Below are positions 6,629 to 18,335 of a DNA stretch of 64,000 nt, one piece after another. How positions within the stretch are numbered: position 1 is the stretch's first letter; each line of letters starts with the position of its first letter. The notes under the pieces were generated by a model that worked only from the letters and a program-made list of their open reading frames with translations, searched no databases and had not been told where the DNA came from. Made by a program: the position numbers and the translations under genes. This DNA comes from Selaginella moellendorffii (Eukaryota; Plantae; Lycopodiophyta): the NCBI RefSeq assembly GCF_000143415.4, contig NW_003314340.1, positions 62,001 through 126,000 of the forward strand. Direction: 5' to 3'.

Positions 6629-7195
6629 ATGGAGGGCAAGATCGATGCCGATGGCTGCACCTATACCAGGATTCGCCGCAAGACTTGCAATACCGTGGAG
6701 GATCCAGAGACGAGGAAGCCGATCTTGAGGTGTGAGAGGCTCGAGCAGCTCCTCCGCCACTGCCCTGGGAGGTAATCTCTATTTCTTTCTTCCAATTTCG
6801 ATCATCATCGATCTAGGAAGCCCGAGGTCGTGGAGTCCAAGAGAGAGGAGACAGAGGAGGACGTTCCAAGCGAGGAGGAGGGCGATCACCAGCACAGCCT
6901 TGGCTCTAGCAGCGGCAATCCATTGTCACGATTCTCCGAGGCGCTGGAGGAGCATCTATCGGGCGAGATCGAGGGATTCATGCGCGCGGCGGAAGAGATG
7001 GCAAACGAGCTGTTTGGGAACTTTGGGATCTTCAAGCACGGCGAGAGAGAGAGGGGCAGCGACGAGGAGAGATTCCACCGGAGAGCTCCATCGCCGCAGC
7101 CATTCGGGCGAGGAAGAAGGGGCGAGGAGATGGAAGGAGAAGAAAAAGAAGGGGAGGATTTCGCGGACTTTCGCAAGGGCTTTAAAGAAGTTTGA
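6629..7195 (+). CDS. Mal d 1-/Fra a 1-associated protein-like, two exons
   Basis: MEGKIDADGCTYTRIRRKTCNTVEDPETRKPILRCERLEQLLRHCPG-intron-PEVVESKREETEED...KEV*; the Cys spacing and 'EVV.S..E.TEED' match the family as I recall it. Confidence 0.7.
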
Positions 7196-7242
7196 GCACA
7201 AAAATTAGGGTTCTTACTTTTAGGGTTCTTGAGAGTTTCTAG

Positions 7243-8377
7243 CTACTGCGCATTGAATCGGTTACACGATCGCCGGATCTCGCCCGCCCCGCCGGTCTTG
7301 ACGCCCAATCTGGAGAGCTTGTCCATGGATGCCGCGAAGGAAAAGAAGAACAGCGCTGGATCTCGAGCGAATAGCCTGACGATTTCCCTGGAGGGGAAGG
7401 AGGCGAGGAGGCTCTCGTCGGATGTGAGCAGCGATCTGCCGGCTTCCAGGTTCTTGAAGTAATGGTTGTCGAAGGTGAAAGGCGCGGCCTTGTCGAAGAA
7501 CTCGATGGCCGTCACAGGGGCTCCTGGCGGGCAGTCCTTCTTGAGTTCCTTCGCGAAGGACGGATCGAGAGAAGGGTCTGTGCCGTCCAGAGAGGTGTTG
7601 ACTCCATAGAGCCTCTGGCTGAATTGCGAGCAGTGGGAGACCCCGAGCGTGTGAGCGCCTGGAAAAAGAGAAGATCATCGAGGCTTTTCGAGCTAGCAGC
7701 TACATATCCATACCAGAGAGCGTGACGAGATCAAGTAAGTTGAGTCCTTTGCTGTGGAAGTTCTTGAGCAGCTCGTCCAGACCAGACCTTGGCGATGGGA
7801 TTTCTCTAAGCGCGCTATCCGCGCGTGACACTGTTCCATCCCTCCGTCCGAGCGCCAGATTCCAGCCCGGCCCTCCCGCCTGGAAGAGTTTATAAAGATC
7901 AAAACAAGGACACAGAAGCATGCTGGAAACTTGCCAGGATCAACATATCTCGAGTGACCATCGCAAGTATATCAGCACACGAGACCACACCCGGGCACTG
8001 GGCTTCCACGGCTTGCTTCGCGAGATCGATCGTATCAAACGCATCCTGGACTAAGTCCCGGTTTGCCACGGAGTCTCTCTCGACCGAGGACTGCGGAGTT
8101 TGGCCGATGAGGATCGATCCATCGCAGCCCTGCATTGTTTGTGGGATTGGCAAACGCGCTCTACCCGATCAACACAAACCTCTACGAAGCAGTCGTGGAA
8201 GAAAAGCCGAAGAACTTGTGCTGGGTGATTGGTCAGCTGCTGGAATCTCCTCAGTGAAACTTGCGCGACGATGGATGCGATGCCTGGGCAGCTCGAGTCG
8301 TAGAAACCGGGCCAGAATTGGTGGGAAGAGCTTGGAAAAATCACTGCGATTGCAATCAAAACAGCCAGAAATCTCAT
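7243..8377 (-). CDS. Class III secretory peroxidase (4 exons)
   Basis: Signal peptide, [10 protein letters not shown]|GCDGSIL, VSCADIL, GRRDG, LSG|AHTLG, FDNHYFKNL, GEIRRSC. Confidence 0.93.
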
Positions 8378-8813
8378 CTTGGTTGGACTCCGCAGCTCAA
8401 GTTACTGTCATGCAATTTAGTTCATTATAATATAAGTGGGATTCTTGAGGTGGACTATTCTGATGAGTGGATCTTATTATTATCTAGCTTTAGCAGTTCT
8501 GGCAATGATTCTCAGGGTTTTGTACCACAAAGTTGCTCATCGAGTAGACAAAGTGAAATTATTGTTTGTAAAAATTGTTTGCTGGAAGTAATGTGAAATT
8601 TCTTCACACCCTTTTAAATTAATGCTAAATCTTAGAATATACTCTATGGACATTCCATATTGCGCTGGAAGTATCTTCTTATTAAAGGTTGAAAGAAAAA
8701 GAAACAGTGACAAAAACGTCTCTCTCTTTCTCTTCGCTCTCTTGCTTTTCCTCTTTCTTTTGCCTCCTGCACATAAAGATTTTGCTATGCAGTCCTTTAT
8801 TTGATTAACTCCC

Positions 8814-10820
8814 TCAGCCATGCTGCTCAAACCCTTCAAGACACTTGAAGAGCGGCTCCATCAGGCTCCCATTGCAGAATGCATCGTATATTTTGTCCAG
8901 GTCCTGCTTGGGAGCTCTTCCTTCCAGGCCACCCCCTGTGAGCATCTCCGTGCCCAGTTCATGACGAACAAACTGGTACAGCGGGTATGAGACGCACTTC
9001 TCTATGATATGAGTCGCAGGTTTGTCCAGGGACTCTTTCCTGGTTGTGGCAATCGCCTCCTCCAGTTTTGGTTTCAATCGATCTTTAAACTCGCCAAATT
9101 TCCTGACCGAGCAGCCCTGCGTGGTGGGATTGGCGAGAAAGACTTGCCTCAGCTTGTTTAGTAGTGTGGAGGAGCCGTCCATTGCATCGTCAATGAAGCT
9201 GAACGTATACTGCTTCTCCACTTCGAGCAGCATGCTCTCAACACAGGCAGCCGGGAAGAACTCATCCCCGATCGAGGAGAGAACTTTCATCACAGCTCCT
9301 TGCAATGCCACCTCCAGATGCCTCAGATCGATCGCCTGGCAGATGCCCAACAAGTACGTGGACAGCATCATCTTGAGAATCTCAGCGGCCTCTTCGGATT
9401 TCCTCGCGGAGACGAGTCCGAGAGAGTTGACTGCCTGATTGTGGTGCTCGGCCGTCTGAACGTGGGTGGTGACGGGATTCGCCAAGTATGCAAGCTCGGA
9501 CATGTAGGCAGCCATGGCAATCTCTGCGCAATGGAATCCATAATCAAGGGACGAGTCCGCACCAGCTGACAGGTTGGAAGGCAGCCCGTTGTTGAAGCTG
9601 GCATTGACCAGCTCCGAGAATTGAGCAAAGACGAGCTTCCCGATTGCGGCCAGGGCGATTCTCACGTTGTCCATCGCGACACCGATGGGAGTGCCTTGGA
9701 AGTTTGCACCGTGCAGCGCCTTGTCACGCGCAACGTCGATCACGGGATTGTCGTTGACCGAGTTGATCTCTCGCTCGATGGAGCGAGTTGCATGGCGGAT
9801 GACTTCGATCTGGGGGCCTAGCCATTGCGGAGAGCTTCGTATTGCGTAGTGGTCTTGCCTGAACTTTTTGAGGTTGTCAACCTGGTTCAGTCTAGCTGCG
9901 GACGCCATGAAAGCGCTGTCTTGAAGGACGTGGTTCATGACTGCCGCAGCTTCGATCTGCCCAGGGTGGCGCTTCAGCTTGTGGATGAGCGGATCTACAA
10001 ACTCGCTGCGTGCGTGGATGACTTCGCAAAACATGGCAGTCAGGACTTCAGCAAAGACGACGAGAACGTTGGCATCGAAGCAAACGAGAGATCCCAGAGC
10101 TGCACCCGCCGAAGTCCCATTCACAAGCGCTATTCCTTCCTTGGGCCGCAGTTCGAATGGAGCTTCAACTCCCGCAAGCTTGAGGGCTTCTTGAGCAGAG
10201 GTGACGCTTCCATCTCTGGTGAAAGCTACTGAATCTGGTCTTCCGGTTAGAACGGCTGCAATGTAGGCCAGCGGCATGAGATCCCCCGAAGCAGTGATTG
10301 ATCCTCGGAGAGGAACTTTGGGCGTAACTTGAGCATTGATGAGCTTGACAATGGCATCCAGGATCTCCCAACGTGTTCCCGAGTAGCCTTGCACCAAACA
10401 GTTGGCCCTCACCAGCATGGTGGCGCGCGTGACATGAACAGGCAAGACATTGCTTGGATTGGTGCCCATGATGCCAGCATTCAAGTAGCGGATTAGCTCC
10501 TGCTGTAGGCCCGAGAAATTTGCCGTCCTTCGATTGCAGTGAGCTCCGAAGCCAGTGGAGATTGCATAGGTATCGACTCCTTTCGCGACACTCTCCATGA
10601 CCCACTCTGCGCATTTGTCCACTCGAGATTTGGCACTCTGGACAGCAAGCTCAACATGGACGTGGTCAGCGCGCCTAGCAACTGCTGTGACTTGCTCGAT
10701 TGTCAGGGCAGTGCCCTCGAGCGCTATCATGCTGGCGTTGTCTAAACCCTTGACCATCCTACGAACTTCCTTCAAGTGGCTATCAACTCCATCCATGGGG
10801 TATGCATCTGCACTTCCCAT
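8814..10820 (-). CDS. PAL: Divergent intronless PAL-family MIO enzyme (aromatic amino acid ammonia-lyase/aminomutase)
   Basis: 668 aa from ATG 10820. MIO motif GSITASGDL plus ALVNGT, NSVNDNP, NFQGTPIG and NNGLPSNL; several active-site substitutions (see findings). Confidence 0.93.
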   Translation of the reverse strand: MGSADAYPMDGVDSHLKEVRRMVKGLDNASMIALEGTALTIEQVTAVARRADHVHVELAVQSAKSRVDKCAEWVMESVAKGVDTYAISTGFGAHCNRRTANFSGLQQELIRYLNAGIMGTNPSNVLPVHVTRATMLVRANCLVQGYSGTRWEILDAIVKLINAQVTPKVPLRGSITASGDLMPLAYIAAVLTGRPDSVAFTRDGSVTSAQEALKLAGVEAPFELRPKEGIALVNGTSAGAALGSLVCFDANVLVVFAEVLTAMFCEVIHARSEFVDPLIHKLKRHPGQIEAAAVMNHVLQDSAFMASAARLNQVDNLKKFRQDHYAIRSSPQWLGPQIEVIRHATRSIEREINSVNDNPVIDVARDKALHGANFQGTPIGVAMDNVRIALAAIGKLVFAQFSELVNASFNNGLPSNLSAGADSSLDYGFHCAEIAMAAYMSELAYLANPVTTHVQTAEHHNQAVNSLGLVSARKSEEAAEILKMMLSTYLLGICQAIDLRHLEVALQGAVMKVLSSIGDEFFPAACVESMLLEVEKQYTFSFIDDAMDGSSTLLNKLRQVFLANPTTQGCSVRKFGEFKDRLKPKLEEAIATTRKESLDKPATHIIEKCVSYPLYQFVRHELGTEMLTGGGLEGRAPKQDLDKIYDAFCNGSLMEPLFKCLEGFEQHG

Positions 10821-11276
10821 TTCACAAGTCCTAGATCTGATCTCACACACACCTGAACCGTCTTCGTTCTAATGGCGAAAAGTAGTCGAAATGGGCTCTC
10901 GTTAGCTCTTTCTACGTGGCTCTTGCTGTTTCCTACGCGTTAAGGGAAAGTTGCCATCGGCATGGCGAGCAGGCAAGATAGGAGTAGGGCAGACAAGCCA
11001 TGGCACGCTACCAGGCGCCGGAAGAACTGCCTGAATGCCCAAGATTCCAAAAGGTTACTCAATAACACAAAGTATGTGACTTTGCATTTTTAACAAAGGG
11101 TAGACTGTCATGGCTGTGAAGCACCAGCTAATCCCCCATGCAATTGAGCTCACCCACGTTCAAACACGAGGGAATTTTGCTCGCCACATTAAAAGTTTAG
11201 CATCAAATTCTTTCTTAACCTTCTATGGTTTATATGAAACTTGATGACATCCAACTATTATGTCTCCACTCATTTA

Positions 11277-12634
11277 TCATTTGGTTTCACAAGACAAGTA
11301 TGCGCTCCACGCGTCTTCGAGGAGACGTCTCAACCTCTCCAGTGTCCCTGTTGGTAAAGTTATGGTGACTTCAATCCCCTGGGGTGATCTTGGATGAGGA
11401 TTGAACATGCAAAGTCCATCCAATCCAAGCCTCTCCAATCCAACATGCCGCACGGCTTCTGGTCTCCCCCATCCCAAATCAATCTCGTAGTACCGGAACC
11501 GCGGCGAGCTCGAGCACAACATGTTACAATTCTTGCCAAGCTTGTCCGCTGCAATGCCCTTGGAGCTAAGCTTCTTCGTGATCCCCTCCATGCCAAAGCT
11601 CGTCGAAACTGCATCCTCCAGCAAGCTTGCAGCATGGCGGAGGCCACCTTTCCGGAGCTCACCAGCAGTCGTCGTTGACACCGCGTGGAGCACTGCATTC
11701 CCAAAGAACTCGTCCGGCAGCTGAGGAGCTAGCCTTTTCCTGCAGTTGGCAGCCATGGAATTGGTGGTGCTCGTGGAATCGGGCAGATCCCTCGCTGCAC
11801 ACATGTTGATCCAGATGTGAGCACTTAGCACTTTGAAACTCGATAACCCGGCGCCAGCCATCTCCTTGATCTTGTCAATGTAGTCTCTCTCGAAGCAGAA
11901 GATTCGACCGCTCATCGCTATGTTACCGGACTTTGGAAGATCATGGCCGCTTGCAACCGGCGAGAAATCACTTGCTCTCGGGTAGTCCAGCTGCTGGGGC
12001 CCGAGATCTCGATCAATGCGAGGAACTTGGCTAATCTCACCTTTGAGACAACTCTCTGCCCAAGATACTAGGAAATGCACCCGGCCAGTTCCATCAGCTA
12101 ATGCATGGTCCGCAGCCCAAAGCCACCGAAATGCCTCCGCACGAGAACCTTGTCACCTAGATGAAATCCAGGGGATGAAATCCTCAAGAAACGCTGGTCA
12201 CTGGTTACCTGGATGCTTAGCAGCGGGCTTCCGAGTGGTGCCGCAGAGCTTCCATACTTGCCACTTCGAATCAGAGCCGAGAAGTCGGGCGATGGCTGAG
12301 AGTAGTCGAGCTTGTCAAGCGGAAAGTCGGCTCTTGCCACTGTCCACTCGACACCAGCGGCATTGCAGTCGATTCCATACGAGTTGCCATCGCTGGAGAG
12401 CGCCAGGCGCCCAGCTGCAGGGTAGAAGTGGAGCAGAACTTTAGAGAGTGAGAGCCTCGCTTGGTGGATCAAGCTCAGGTTCTGCGCGTCCGAGCGAGAG
12501 CCTGGATAGAACGCAACACCTTGCATATAGGGATGGAAGATGTATTTCATATCAAACTGGGAGAGAGGAAGGAAGCAGCTTGGAGTTGGGGATAGCGGCT
12601 CAAGCATGAGGCGCTCAATCTCCTCGACCTTCAT
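11277..12634 (-). pseudogene. BAHD acyltransferase, 2 exons, with a +1 frameshift just before the HXXXD motif (pseudogene or sequencing error)
   Basis: LSKVLLHFYPAAGRL, conserved IQ|VT intron, HALAD motif, FFGNAV and DLGWG. Exon 2 in frame hits TGA unless one T of GCTTTGG (~12119-12121) is removed. Confidence 0.85.
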
Positions 12635-12774
12635 GATCTTTGTGGAGTGTAGAGCCCTTTCAAGAAATCGCGTTATATTGTTCTCTTCAAACGATTAGAT
12701 TTTAATAACTAGACAAGATTTTCTTAGCTGCGAGGAAGATCTCCGCTGGAAAATGGAAACGGAAGCACGCTCGC

Positions 12775-13570
<796 letters not shown>

Positions 13571-13710: not shown

Positions 13711-14772
13711 ATGGTTAAGAAAAGAGCGATGTGTGAGGAGGTGTTTAGGCTGTTCCTCAGGGATATCTTAGAGATGGTTCCAGTAGAGGTTTTGACTGGT
13801 AGTGTGAGATTGGTTTGTCAAAGTTGGGCAGCGTGCTCACGCGAGATTCTAAAAAACTTATGCTTTTTGCAACTCCGGACATGGAAGTTCGTAACTAGTA
13901 TCAGGCTTGATCTTGTTCTAAGACAGAGCAGAGACGGGGAATTGTCATGGAAGGAGATGCCATTGACATTTTTGATGGATTTTGTGCGCAGGCAAACTCT
14001 CCCGCGGGGTTATCATCCTCTTTACCCTAGAGGCTCCATGGCCTACGATCATGACAGCAACCTTGCCTTCTTCTTGTTTTCTAGTTCGAATCGCTTCGCT
14101 AGTATATGGACAGTATTTGTGTGTGATTTTTTCTCCAAACGAGTGAAGGCACTGCCCAGTTTTGAATCTTACAATAAGTATTTCCTTGAAATGGCCATAG
14201 CGAGTGACAAGAATGCAAAACGATACAAGCTTATTGTGCCTATGGTCGATGGTGGAAAATGGGACTCTGTGTGGATGTTTGACTCGAGTGCAAATGCATG
14301 GAAGGAAATCGACGGCTCGGCAGAGTACTGTATGGTCAGTGCAATTTCTCACGGAGGTGAATGGTATGAGTTGAAGGCTTTTCGATCAGAGGGCACTCAT
14401 GAGAAGCTATTAGGATCACAGTTGCTAAAGCTTAGCCGCGGGGAGTGTACAATTGGAGAAATCAAGCTGGACTGGCTGTCATCCGTAAAGCTTGAGAAGT
14501 GGCAGGATGGTTTCTTAGTTGCTCAGTATAATCCTGGTCTTGCAGTTCTCAGGCTTTGGGAAGTGGTGGGGAGCAAGGTTAAGGAGATTGCATGCTTGAC
14601 TGGAATTGATCATCCAGATGAGTGGGGCATCAAGGCTTGGAATGACAAGGTTTATATAGCGTTACTGAGGCAATTAGAGTGGTATAAACTTATGGAATGG
14701 AGTCATGGAGTATGGAAGGAACTCTTGGCTACAAAAGGATGCAGTAAACTTGTCCATGTCCAGCTTGTTTAA
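13711..14772 (+). CDS. Intronless F-box-like protein with beta-propeller-like C-terminus
   Basis: N-terminal LRDILEMVPVEVLTGSVRLVCQSW has the F-box pattern; VFVCDFFSKRVKALP and MFDSSANAW resemble F-box-associated repeats. Confidence 0.75.
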   Translation: MVKKRAMCEEVFRLFLRDILEMVPVEVLTGSVRLVCQSWAACSREILKNLCFLQLRTWKFVTSIRLDLVLRQSRDGELSWKEMPLTFLMDFVRRQTLPRGYHPLYPRGSMAYDHDSNLAFFLFSSSNRFASIWTVFVCDFFSKRVKALPSFESYNKYFLEMAIASDKNAKRYKLIVPMVDGGKWDSVWMFDSSANAWKEIDGSAEYCMVSAISHGGEWYELKAFRSEGTHEKLLGSQLLKLSRGECTIGEIKLDWLSSVKLEKWQDGFLVAQYNPGLAVLRLWEVVGSKVKEIACLTGIDHPDEWGIKAWNDKVYIALLRQLEWYKLMEWSHGVWKELLATKGCSKLVHVQLV

Positions 14773-15116
14773 TCCTGTTAACACTTCTCATTGATCAATC
14801 AAGATGGTTTATCTACGATGCAGTACTTCCAGAGATGCGCCAGGTGGTGTTTAGGCTGCTCCTTGCTTACAGCACATGGATCTTTAGTTAGTATTAAAAA
14901 TTTACTTTGTATATCAACCTCCTCGGTACTGAAGCAATCAGACTGAAGCATAACATTTCTTCTTGGCTCCAGAAATCTGCTTGTTCTTCCTGCCAAAACA
15001 CTCATTGGTGAGAACGAGCGCACATACTCGACAGCCAGTTTTGGCCAGCTTTGCCGCTGCCATTGCAATGGCATTGCCTCAACATCCCGCGCTCTGTAAC
15101 CGATCCAAGAGAAATG

Positions 15117-16300
15117 CATAATACAGCACCCCCCTCTCTTATGTGGCTGCCTATTTGCCATGTTCACTCGCCTCCTCTGTAGTCACACCTAGCTCTGCAC
15201 CCTAAATGTTTAACGACTAACGTTAAATTTTAATTAGTAGATGTTGTTAACTAATATGTTAATGACTATAATTTTATAATTAGCCAGTGAATGAACTTAT
15301 AAGTATATAACCTATTATTGGTTTAGGTTTTTCTATATTTTCTTTTTTATTTTATTCATTCTCTTTAGTGACCACAAGATCTCTTAAAACTAATACATGG
15401 TTTGCAAATAGTAATCTTACATTTACTCAAATGCTTAGAGTAATGTATTGTTGGTGCATTAAAATGCCATAAAATCAAACTTATATTTAGTGTAGTATTA
15501 AAAGTGAGCACACAACAACAAATTGGTATAACTTTTGTTGTGATATCTATATTATCACATTATAACAAGGTAGTCAAAAGATTGGTGGTCCAGGAAGAAT
15601 TGTGGAAATTGATGAAAGTAAGTTTGGTAAGCAGAAATATAATCATGGTAGAAGAGTAGAAGGTCAATAAATTTTTGGAGAAATTAAACATGATTTAGAT
15701 CAAATATTTATGGTTCTGATGGCTGATCATACTGCACAAACTTTAACTAATATATTATATACATATGTTAAACCAGGTAAGCTCTATTTCTATTATTATT
15801 CTTAACTAGTAATTATAATTAATTTTTTAGAAACAATTATATATAGTTATTTTTGGGCTGGTTATGATTCAAAATGGTTGAATCAATTGAACTTTATTCA
15901 TTATACAGTCAACCAATCCCAGAATTTTATTGATCCCATAACTAGAATTCATACAAATTGTATTGAATCAACATGGAATGCAGTGAAAAGATCCTTTCCT
16001 CACTAATATAAGAAAAGGATTATACAACTTTTACTTTCAAGAATATATTTAGCAAAAAATATATATTGAAAGAAAGGAAGTTGCATTTAATATTCTATGC
16101 AGTCATATTAAGCTATACAATCAAGATAATGCTGTTAAGTAGAATAAATAGTATAATTGATTTTTTTACTTTTAAATACTTAAAAATAATTTAAAACAAT
16201 ATATTAGAACAATGGCATGCCCGTGTAAGCTATGAGGTGGCATGCAAATCCAAATAAGCAAATGGGGCCCACCCTAAATAAAGGGGGTGCTATTCTACCC
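15117..16300 (+). mobile_element. Decayed Merlin / ISXO2-like (IS1595 family) DNA transposon
   Basis: Hand translation of 15390-16005: TWFANSNL.., KIGGPGRIVEIDESKFGKQKYNHGRRVEGQ*IFG...VKP|intron|TIIYSYFWAGY...HYTVNQSQNFIDPITRIHTNCIESTW. Imperfect inverted ends share an AGCACCCCC..ATTTGC core; the segment is AT-rich. Confidence 0.85.
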
Positions 16301-16429
16301 ACTGATTTCTCCATCGCATTGCCCTCGAGATCCCTCCCTTCCCTACTCCAGCTGCTGTCGATCCATTCCCTAGCATCAGCGCCCCAATGCAATGGCGCGG
16401 GCAGTGTGGAGAAGAAAGCCTGCTAGAAC

Positions 16430-18335
16430 ATGAAGATTCCCACCAAGAATTAAAGAATTCTTGTTTTAAACATGTATCAAAACGGAATTTCTCAAAAATC
16501 ATTTTAAAAAGGTGTGCGTGCAGTGCTGGTAGTAGGGTGCACGCGAAAGAAGCTCGTGCTATTTGCAACTCCGGGCGAGTTCTACATGTAAGTTCCCAAC
16601 TAATCTCAAGCTTGATGTTCTACGACAGAGCAAAAACGGGGAATTATCATGGATGGAGATACCATTGAACTTCTTGATGGATCTTGAGGTACAAAGTGGC
16701 CTCTTGAGAGTAACCTTGCCTTCTTGTTTGGGAGTTCGAATATATAGACAGTATTTGTGTGTGATCCTTTCTCCAGGAAAGTGAAGGCACTGCCCTGAAA
16801 ACTAGCAGAAAATATAGTGAGTGGCAATGATGCAAGACGATACAAGCTTGTTGTGCCTATGATTGCATCACCCAATTCTGTGTCAATTAACTACATTAAC
16901 TCCATTTATCAATTAAATTTGATTCCTACTTTAATTTAACTTACAGGTAGGAGCTCCTTCGCCTTCTCATTCTCCTGGAATGCCTGGTGGATTAGAATGT
17001 GGGCAAAGTGGTGGTATAGTTCTGTTCACAGGTCTACGAAATTCTCACCATTCCCACTCCACCGTCCGGTTGGAGACAAGATAGTTCTGCAATATGATGC
17101 AAAGGTAGAAGCCTTTTTCTAGCCTGAATTTAGATTCTCGTCCTATAAGGTTTCTGTGTTTGATTCTATCGTGAAGACGGTGTCTAGGAAGGGCTCTGCA
17201 TTTAAAATGGAAAGGTTTTCAAGCTAGGAGAGCATGTAGACAGTTGGAGAAGTTTTCTTTTCGAGTTTGACATGCAGTTTGATTCAGCCAATGTGGCATC
17301 TACAACTGTGACTTTGTAAGAAACCTTGTATCAAGGTTCGGACTACTAACGACTTTACAGGTGAAACAAGCCTTACTTTAGACGTTGATCCTAAATGGGA
17401 TGTTTGACAATGCTCCACACTGACAAGAGGAATGAAGGTTTGTTTCCTTACCTTTGAAATATTAGAAGGTTGTAATGCAGTGCTTTGTATAGATTACATC
17501 TTGAATGAGTCTTGCAACTTGTATGGCTTCACGCCTCTGAGGTATGAATTTTCTCAACATACAAATACTTGAATGACAAAAGATCTTCACCTTTGCTAGT
17601 AACTCTGCTGCACAATTATGGTCACAAATATATTTTTAAGTCACTATAAATTTGTTTTCATATTGTATGGTCAATAGCTCAACTGAGTACTTTGCAAACA
17701 GTGCAATTTCTAGTGGAGGTGAATGGTGGGTTAGGGGAGCAATTAAAATCCCACTTGCTAAAGCTTTGTTGCAGGGAGTGTACAGTTGGAGTAATCAAGG
17801 TGGACTAGTCTCAATGGTGTCATGGAAGTTGGACTTTTTGATAGATTTTGTGTCCAGGCAAAGAGTTAAGGGCTAACTATAGAGGTTCCATGGCCTACGA
17901 CCAGTTTTAAATCTTGGAGAGAATATCCCCAAGCTTGTGCTTTTAGGGTGTTTGAAGCAAAATACAGGCGGATTGTATAATTGGAGAAATCAAGCTTAGC
18001 TCACCGCCATCCTGAGAATTATTCATGCTTGGCAGGATGGTTTCTTAGTTGCTAGTCCTGCAGTCCTCAGGGAAGTGGTGGAGAGCAATGAATGAGATTT
18101 AGAATCAAAATCCAGATGTTTGGGGATGAACTTCAGTGGGGATGAACTCCCACCATCTTACCATCAGCTCAAATGGAGGAGCTGCAACTAGAGAGTGTAG
18201 GGAGTTTTAAGTTCATAGTTGTACCCCTTGGTCCTGAAGCCAATAAAGTGGTATAAACTGTCTAGCAGCAGCTCTTGCTTGGAGAAGATACGGGAAAATA
18301 CACTGATCTTGTCCGCGTTCAGCTTGTCTAATCCT
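16430..18335 (+). pseudogene. Second broken F-box paralog, interrupted by ~0.8 kb of unrelated sequence (~16880-17690)
   Basis: FPTNLKLDVLRQSKNGELSWMEIPLNFLMD and SAISSGGEW, plus nucleotide blocks matching 13711-14772, up to cttgtccgcgttcagcttgtctaa. Confidence 0.78.

Follow-up and report, generated by a model that had tools for sequence, protein, structure and literature searches.

The window analysed here is a 64-kb stretch of the spikemoss Selaginella moellendorffii genome (64,000 nucleotides of scaffold GL377644.1, assembly GCA_000143415.2). Its minus strand holds, within 5.4 kb and all in the same orientation, genes of three enzyme classes: a class III peroxidase, an enzyme of the phenylalanine ammonia-lyase (PAL) family, which is built around a 4-methylideneimidazole-5-one (MIO) group, and a BAHD acyltransferase. 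A first-pass annotation had proposed that the three form a specialised-metabolite module. We examined the genes, their two alleles and the RNA over them, and the following features of the window are used below.

7001..8440, plus strand: antisense transcript, unspliced, that spans the full peroxidase gene (stranded reads and contigs)
7243..8377, minus strand: class III peroxidase gene, four exons, 324 aa (PF00141 on all four exon open reading frames)
8814..10820, minus strand: PAL-family (MIO) gene, intronless, 668 aa (P0001; PF00221)
9531..9533, minus strand: His430, at parsley PAL Lys456, with the adjoining Gly457 changed to Cys (alignment with 118 PALs)
10284..10292, minus strand: Ala-Ser-Gly MIO triad, residues 177-179 (translation check; the same in 118 plant PALs)
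10485..10487, minus strand: Tyr112, at the selectivity switch, parsley PAL Phe137 (alignment to 1w27)
11277..12634, minus strand: BAHD gene, frameshifted allele, exon 1 12634-12209, exon 2 12156-11277 (PF02458)
11466..11480, minus strand: BAHD DFGWG-type motif, Asp-Leu-Gly-Trp-Gly (aligned to the DFGWG of rosmarinate synthase and HCTs)
12093..12107, minus strand: BAHD HXXXD motif, His-Ala-Leu-Ala-Asp (out of frame with exon 1 in the window haplotype)
12119..12121, minus strand: T-run with one extra T relative to the other haplotype (haplotype DNA alignment)
12208-12157, minus strand: BAHD intron, 52 nt, GT-AG (removed in RNA reads and in contigs of X1 and X8)
12775..13570, minus strand: flanking ribosomal protein S9 (RPS9) gene (annotation, PF00163 and PF01479)

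The first-pass annotation had placed three co-oriented neighbours about 430 bp apart at 7243-12634, and both the positions and the spacing hold: the PAL stop lies 436 bp from the ATG of the peroxidase, the BAHD stop 456 bp from the ATG of the PAL gene, and 140 bp separate the RPS9 stop from the BAHD ATG. The assembly contains both haplotypes of the sequenced plant, the second copy of the region being GL377632.1 (L002; haplotype B below). The order RPS9-BAHD-PAL-peroxidase-EAF is identical in the two, which answers one of the two synteny checks that had been suggested, the one in the other haplotype. In haplotype B the spacer between the PAL and peroxidase genes is 1206 bp long (L002:12008-13213) and includes an insertion of about 0.8 kb whose opposite strand carries part of a MatE transporter gene (positions 53-135 of the 161 in the PF01554 profile). 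This MatE piece is a fragment, less than a whole gene, and is missing from the window haplotype, which has an AG-rich microsatellite in place of the insertion. No published account of the locus was found in the literature searched by accession and by topic.

A derived member of the PAL family

The PAL-family domain was matched at E 1.5e-145 over profile positions 1-451 of 466 (open reading frame 8814-10850), and the haplotype B allele (P0121, XP_002985337.1) is annotated 'phenylalanine ammonia-lyase'. The best solved relative of the protein is parsley PAL (1w27, E 1.7e-222). Like parsley PAL1 and the canonical S. moellendorffii PAL (P0091), with which it aligns over the full length, it carries the MIO triad. 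In contrast to canonical PAL, to which it is only 55-57% identical, it has a shorter N terminus and two gaps in the C-terminal domain. Besides its own second allele, the nearest among 5.8 billion proteins has 57% identity, and identity with P0091 is 55%. No orthologue turned up in any other organism by protein search or by a word search with residues 78-127, which cover the Tyr-loop and the switch region; that word search, aimed also at grass tyrosine aminomutases, returned the query only. The lack of introns was considered as a sign of a retrogene and set aside, since the canonical S. moellendorffii PAL is intronless as well.

We defined near-invariant columns as those conserved in at least 97% of 118 plant PALs (n = 270). 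The PAL-like protein differs at 53 of the 270 in both haplotypes, compared with 1-11 in six control PALs, and the earlier description of a non-canonical PAL-family enzyme is thus well founded. The catalytic machinery is retained in both haplotypes: the Ala-Ser-Gly triad, Tyr110, Asn260, Gln348, Tyr351, Arg354, Asn384, Phe400, Glu484, Asn487 and Gln488 are kept, and all 11 catalytic residues that were checked are present. At a substitution rate of 20%, 11 of 11 would be retained by chance with a probability of about 0.09.

In the substrate pocket Phe137 is replaced by Tyr, Lys456 by His and Leu256 by Ile. Further changes are Gly457 to Cys, Gln485 to His and Asp489 to Ala, and in the lid loop Thr119, Ser120 and His121 have become His, Cys and Asn. 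Position 137 is Phe in 115 of the 118 PALs and Tyr in none, and the PAL-like enzyme reads Tyr-Leu instead of the Phe-Leu pair. Position 456 is Lys in all 118 and His in none; the enzyme has His430 there, departing from the canonical residue. The canonical S. moellendorffii PAL (P0091, scaffold GL377620.1) itself has Val at the Phe137 switch (ELIRVLNAGI), shared with only one other of the 118 PALs, and the PAL of S. kraussiana has Phe at this position.

In a maximum-likelihood tree, the PAL-like branch has a length of about 2.06 changes per site. Placement of the gene in a clade with the Selaginella PALs was borderline rejected (approximately unbiased (AU) test, p = 0.041) under long-branch conditions. 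Because the backbone of the tree is weakly supported and the AU test is borderline, we claim no origin for the gene.

The two PAL-like alleles are 98% identical, and the 668-codon frame is open in both. Between them we counted 14 non-synonymous and 10 synonymous differences (dN/dS 0.43, p = 0.039, one-sided, as are all allele p values here, for fewer non-synonymous differences than the neutral expectation). The PAL-like gene is thus still under purifying constraint between the haplotypes. The case for a function rests mainly on the intact frame after so much divergence and on this allele comparison. Taken together, the alignments describe a highly derived putative MIO enzyme that has kept its catalytic residues.

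Two codons set the alleles apart. Codon 324 (9849-9851) encodes His in the window allele, where haplotype B and 118 of 118 PALs have Arg350; codon 284 encodes Arg in the window allele, where haplotype B and parsley PAL have His. The window PAL-like allele may be accumulating mildly damaging changes, alongside the adjoining frameshifted BAHD.

The His that distinguishes phenylalanine/tyrosine ammonia-lyases (PTALs) and tyrosine ammonia-lyases (TALs) is the known Phe137 switch. To our knowledge, plant tyrosine aminomutases (TAMs) are so far known only from two grasses. A 2026 commentary on Sakamoto et al. describes OsTAM1 of rice and ZmTAM1 of maize as PAL-annotated enzymes that produce (R)-beta-tyrosine (PMC13586772). 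According to the same source, TAMs are marked by a Tyr (Y125 in OsTAM1, Y128 in ZmTAM1) where PTALs have His and by an Asn (N446 and N449, respectively) at a position that is otherwise Lys; a Tyr-to-His exchange lowered aminomutase activity, an Asn-to-Lys exchange eliminated it, and the Tyr and Asn alone were insufficient for it (PMC13586772). We took these residues from the commentary and checked their equivalence indirectly, through residue numbering: in our alignment, parsley Phe137 and Lys456 correspond to Phe128 and Lys449 of Narcissus PAL, which are the numbers of ZmTAM1.

On this numbering, the spikemoss enzyme has the TAM-type Tyr at the switch (Tyr112, aligned to parsley Phe137), and it has lost the Lys in favour of His430, instead of the Asn of the TAMs. 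It has in common with OsTAM1 and ZmTAM1 the plant PAL scaffold, the MIO triad, the switch Tyr, the loss of the pocket Lys and the plain 'PAL' annotation. On the other hand, it differs from the grass TAMs in having His and not Asn, in forming a long lycophyte branch outside the grass TAM clade, and in many further changes at conserved positions. Because the Tyr is shared and the Lys is lost, a tyrosine-directed lyase or mutase chemistry would most likely be the new activity. We infer that the enzyme is probably no longer a plain phenylalanine ammonia-lyase; its substrate would most likely be tyrosine or another ring-substituted aromatic amino acid, on which it would act as a lyase or an aminomutase.

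The peroxidase, the BAHD gene and their RNA

The peroxidase coding exons (8377-8180, 8129-7935, 7879-7714 and 7658-7243) give one open frame when spliced. The introns are 50, 55 and 55 nt long, and the second (7880-7934) has a GC-AG donor (GCAAGT). The predicted protein begins with a signal-peptide-like N terminus and carries RLFFHDCFV with the distal Arg and His, GAHTLG with the proximal His, and 8 Cys. It therefore has all the marks of a class III peroxidase that we looked for (signal peptide, RxxFHDCF, GAHTxG, eight Cys and three introns) and is an ordinary secreted class III peroxidase. Its alleles differ by 3 non-synonymous and 5 synonymous changes (dN/dS 0.19, p = 0.025).

Four RNA runs (X1, X8, X23 and X24, tissues not known) were mapped on 7001-13000, of which X23 and X24 are stranded. 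The strand was calibrated with the minus-strand RPS9 gene, which gives first mates on plus at a depth of 300-400 compared with about 1 on the other strand. Over the peroxidase (bins 7201-8400, X23 and X24), the sense depth, that is first mates on plus, was 0 in five of six bins and at most 1.25, and the antisense depth, first mates on minus, was 3-12. No splice joints were reported over the gene, and no sense peroxidase mRNA was detected in the four runs. The contigs of X1 (7001-8438) and X8 (7001-8384) continue unspliced through all three peroxidase introns. This antisense transcript starts to the left of 7001 and ends near 8384-8440. It may be a long 3' tail of the hypothetical gene that occupies 6629-7195 on the plus strand, and silencing of the peroxidase by this transcript is conceivable.

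A CT/AG-rich microsatellite at 8719-8770 draws many reads that match only in part and have loose ends (59 and 51 in X23). These reads likely come from other loci and make a spurious depth peak in bin 8601-8800.

The BAHD family domain (PF02458) was found on both pieces of the open reading frame, 11277-12080 and 12098-12634. The first-pass annotation had called this copy frameshifted, and the alignment of the haplotypes agrees: the window has TTT at 12119-12121 where haplotype B has TT. The extra T shifts the frame 4 codons upstream of HXXXD, so that HALAD and the remainder of exon 2 are read in the wrong frame. The haplotype B allele (P0125, XP_024515137.1, named 'rosmarinate synthase isoform X1' by NCBI) is intact, with 435 aa, HALAD and DLGWG. 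Alternative splicing was considered as the cause of the break and rejected, as no donor/acceptor pair repairs the frame without loss of the conserved CGG-loop segment and haplotype B differs by exactly one T. An assembly error is also unlikely: 4 of 4 X23 reads and 2 of 4 from X24 skip the base at 12119, as do the contigs of X1 and X8, and the other two X24 reads, in counts that are low, retain it. This suggests that the frameshift is a real allele that is also present in RNA. The intact allele is expressed and dominant in the reads. Thus, the possibility that the BAHD is dead in all haplotypes, which had been named as fatal to the module, is excluded by an intact, spliced and expressed haplotype B allele. 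The BAHD alleles differ by 17 non-synonymous and 7 synonymous changes (dN/dS 0.74, p = 0.33), which is indistinguishable from neutral; selection on the gene looks relaxed, consistent with one null allele.

Rosmarinate synthase and the hydroxycinnamoyl-CoA:shikimate transferases (HCTs) are the best solved relatives of the BAHD protein (E 2e-41 to 1e-37, about 30% identity). It shares with these enzymes of BAHD clade V a full-length alignment, the HXXXD motif and the DFGWG-type motif. Arg356, the 'handle', Thr369 and Trp371 (Arabidopsis HCT numbering) are residues that we take to be the shikimate site of HCT. They align to Leu, Ser and Ser (phmmer versus 5kjt), with moderate confidence as the alignment is gapped nearby. 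Because the shikimate-site residues are replaced, the protein is unlikely to be a canonical shikimate transferase. Unlike HCT in these three residues, it also has its closest kin among species-specific tandem paralogues: an exhaustive HMMER search returned S. moellendorffii tandem 'BAHD clade I' paralogues as the nearest proteins, at 40% identity. Unnamed transcript contigs match at 39% identity, and a word-index search with exon 2 returned only its own fragment, the index being blind to such a divergent protein. BAHD genes are massively expanded in S. moellendorffii (PMC11449225). These alignments place the protein, in divergent form, in that part of the family to which HCT and rosmarinate synthase belong.

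RNA from the PAL-like gene was found as first mates on plus only, that is sense, at a depth of 1-5, with a 2141-nt contig in X1. RNA over the BAHD was mainly first mates on plus (sense) at a depth of 1-10, with the intron, to which the first-pass annotation had not referred, spliced. X8 has a full BAHD contig and lacks the PAL-like contig. When more runs were compared by the sequence words they contain, PAL words occurred in runs of two studies, P1 and P2, and at a weak level in P6 and a single P9 run. At least six runs from five studies (X8, X10, X11, X14, X15 and X20) contained 1/5 to 1/3 of the whole stretch and no or nearly no PAL words. These comparisons, rough and drawn from few samples, point away from co-regulation of the two genes.

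The RPS9 gene may account for part of the BAHD signal. BAHD depth is about 1-3% of RPS9 depth in all four runs (160 versus 13551; 69 versus 2079; about 3 versus 300-400). RPS9 depth steps down from 300-400 to 58-82 in bin 12601-12800 and to 4-11 in bin 12401-12600. Six RPS9 molecules end within the coding sequence of the BAHD, at 12559, and contigs of the BAHD reach 12775. It appears that the RPS9 3' untranslated region runs to about 12559, over the BAHD start codon (12634), and it is plausible that much of the BAHD RNA signal is read-through from RPS9.

Chance neighbours or a biosynthetic cluster

We favour the reading, with a probability of roughly 55%, that these are three real, separate neighbours in a very compact genome and not a demonstrated co-regulated biosynthetic cluster, and that the PAL-like enzyme is altered. 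In this reading the peroxidase is silent on its own strand in the RNA examined and covered by the unspliced antisense transcript. The BAHD is polymorphic in the sequenced plant, with one null allele and one that is intact, spliced and weakly expressed. The PAL-family gene encodes a fast-evolved yet constrained MIO enzyme with an altered aryl pocket and Tyr-loop. Gene structures, alleles, transcribed strands and divergence are shown directly by the data, whereas the change of substrate, the read-through and the missing functional link are inferred. The BAHD and class III peroxidase families both have many members. Where spacers measure about 0.4 kb, 'metabolic' triplets are expected by chance several times per genome, on a rough estimate from family sizes. 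The neighbourhood is most likely chance and the peroxidase most likely a bystander; a functional link among the three genes is probably lacking.

Measured by what defines a plant gene cluster, the locus gives a divided answer. At least three adjacent non-homologous biosynthetic genes lie side by side in both haplotypes, and, like clusters of the plantiSMASH type, the locus packs three non-homologous specialised-metabolism families into 5.4 kb. Unlike such clusters, it has one member with a null allele and another that is sense-silent, and co-expression, synteny and a pathway are without support. The co-expression of all three genes that the first-pass annotation had named as a check is contradicted by the peroxidase, which has antisense RNA only, and by X8, which has BAHD without PAL; with few runs, both this verdict and the failure of co-expression in the runs examined are provisional. 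No CoA ligase, P450, methyltransferase, glycosyltransferase or other pathway gene was found in the 64-kb window. With the peroxidase sense-silent, the PAL-like and BAHD genes uncoupled and further pathway genes absent from the 64 kb, the three-gene metabolite module gains no support. What survives of the proposed biosynthetic module is the derived MIO enzyme and a BAHD that is not dead everywhere; the cluster itself is without support.

Several points weigh against the reading of chance neighbours. The PAL-like and BAHD genes are both sense-transcribed in X23, X24 and X1. The RNA base is thin, with gene depths of 1-12 in four runs, and the share of words in different runs reflects expression only roughly. 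Class III peroxidases are often expressed in particular organs or under stress, and a gene that is silent in these four runs may not be silent everywhere. The PAL-like and BAHD genes are direct neighbours, lineage-restricted and fast-evolving, and belong to phenylpropanoid families; young plant clusters often show lineage-restricted, fast-evolving neighbour genes. As for the altered enzyme, 3 of 17 active-site residues are changed compared with 20% of all conserved columns, which is no enrichment. Since the pocket changes occur at the background rate, they may reflect general drift and not a new specificity.

A two-gene module is an unlikely explanation, though one to be kept in view. Here the PAL-like enzyme would make an unusual aryl or beta-amino acid (p-coumarate or beta-tyrosine), the BAHD would transfer an acyl group to or from the product, and the peroxidase would be a bystander. 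The two genes are directly adjacent and co-oriented in both haplotypes, both proteins are very divergent (57% and 40% identity, respectively, to the nearest other proteins), and their sense RNA occurs together in the three runs named above. The acceptor-pocket residues of the BAHD are unlike those of HCT and rosmarinate synthase, which fits a new acceptor, and the PAL-like enzyme has the TAM-type Tyr. Taxus pairs a PAL-derived aminomutase with BAHD transferases. The resemblance to Taxus PAM and the taxol BAHDs lies in the families, a PAL-derived MIO enzyme and a BAHD acyltransferase. On the other hand, the PAL-like protein is nearer to PAL than to PAM (E 1.5e-179), and the 33 solved BAHD chains that were matched include no taxane acyltransferase. 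Against the module also stand the BAHD contig of X8 without a PAL contig, with five further runs holding no or nearly no PAL words; a BAHD level relative to RPS9 that is what read-through predicts; one null BAHD allele and near-neutral allele differences; and the absence of an acid-activating CoA ligase from the 64 kb.

That the two genes are instead decaying duplicates, redundant paralogues drifting to pseudogenes with no specific function, we regard as distinctly improbable. This would agree with the BAHD frameshift and the non-synonymous and synonymous differences between its alleles (17 versus 7), with the loss of 20% of the near-invariant PAL columns, with the His that replaces the invariant Arg350 in the window allele while haplotype B keeps Arg, and with the low expression. 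However, despite about 2 changes per site, neither haplotype has lost the open PAL-like frame of 668 codons, the 11 catalytic residues and the MIO triad are retained, the non-synonymous differences between the PAL-like alleles fall below the neutral prediction, and haplotype B has an intact BAHD, with the two motifs, that is spliced and expressed.

It is more doubtful still that the PAL-like protein is a lycophyte aminomutase or lyase for tyrosine or another substituted aryl amino acid that arrived at the switch Tyr and the loss of the Lys independently of the grass TAMs, with the BAHD using its product.

A three-gene cluster, in which the MIO enzyme would be followed by BAHD acyl transfer and then by phenol coupling through the peroxidase, is very improbable: three classes of phenolic-metabolism enzymes do lie co-oriented in 5.4 kb in both haplotypes and pass the positional rule of cluster mining, but the four runs gave neither sense nor spliced RNA of the peroxidase, a gene that lies under an antisense transcript, class III peroxidases with their signal peptide act in the apoplast or vacuole and PAL and BAHD enzymes in the cytosol, expression of the PAL-like gene is uncoupled from that of the BAHD, the insertion of about 0.8 kb in haplotype B breaks the PAL-peroxidase spacer so that the tight spacing is not kept, and no orthologous cluster was found, the adjacency being seen only between two haplotypes of one individual.

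Thus, we propose that the PAL-like gene, rather than the cluster, is the lead worth following. The grass TAMs were hidden behind a 'PAL' annotation, and the lycophyte gene, under the same label, shares their switch Tyr and the loss of the Lys. With it, one could test directly and at low cost whether the PAL scaffold has given rise repeatedly to aminomutase or tyrosine chemistry, and which residues this chemistry needs. If the two-gene module were true, it would be the first pairing of an MIO enzyme and a BAHD outside seed plants. The locus also carries a caution for cluster mining: spacers of about 0.4 kb let three neighbours pass positional rules, while stranded RNA shows one of them silent and overlapped by antisense RNA, and the signal of another may come from RPS9 read-through.

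The surroundings are those that the first-pass annotation described, as the public scaffold annotation confirms. The ribosomal S4/S9 gene lies on one side, and on the other side are the plus-strand hypothetical gene (6629-7195), EAF and Q_salvage. The remaining genes of the 64-kb window are PPR genes, an NIF phosphatase, a GH3 fragment and a kinase. Beyond RPS9, an open reading frame of 353 aa at 13711-14772, which is F-box-less, borders an AT-rich block at 15000-17500 (GC 0.32-0.41, compared with about 0.53 around it). The block, which lies between this open reading frame and a PPR gene, may be a transposon remnant.

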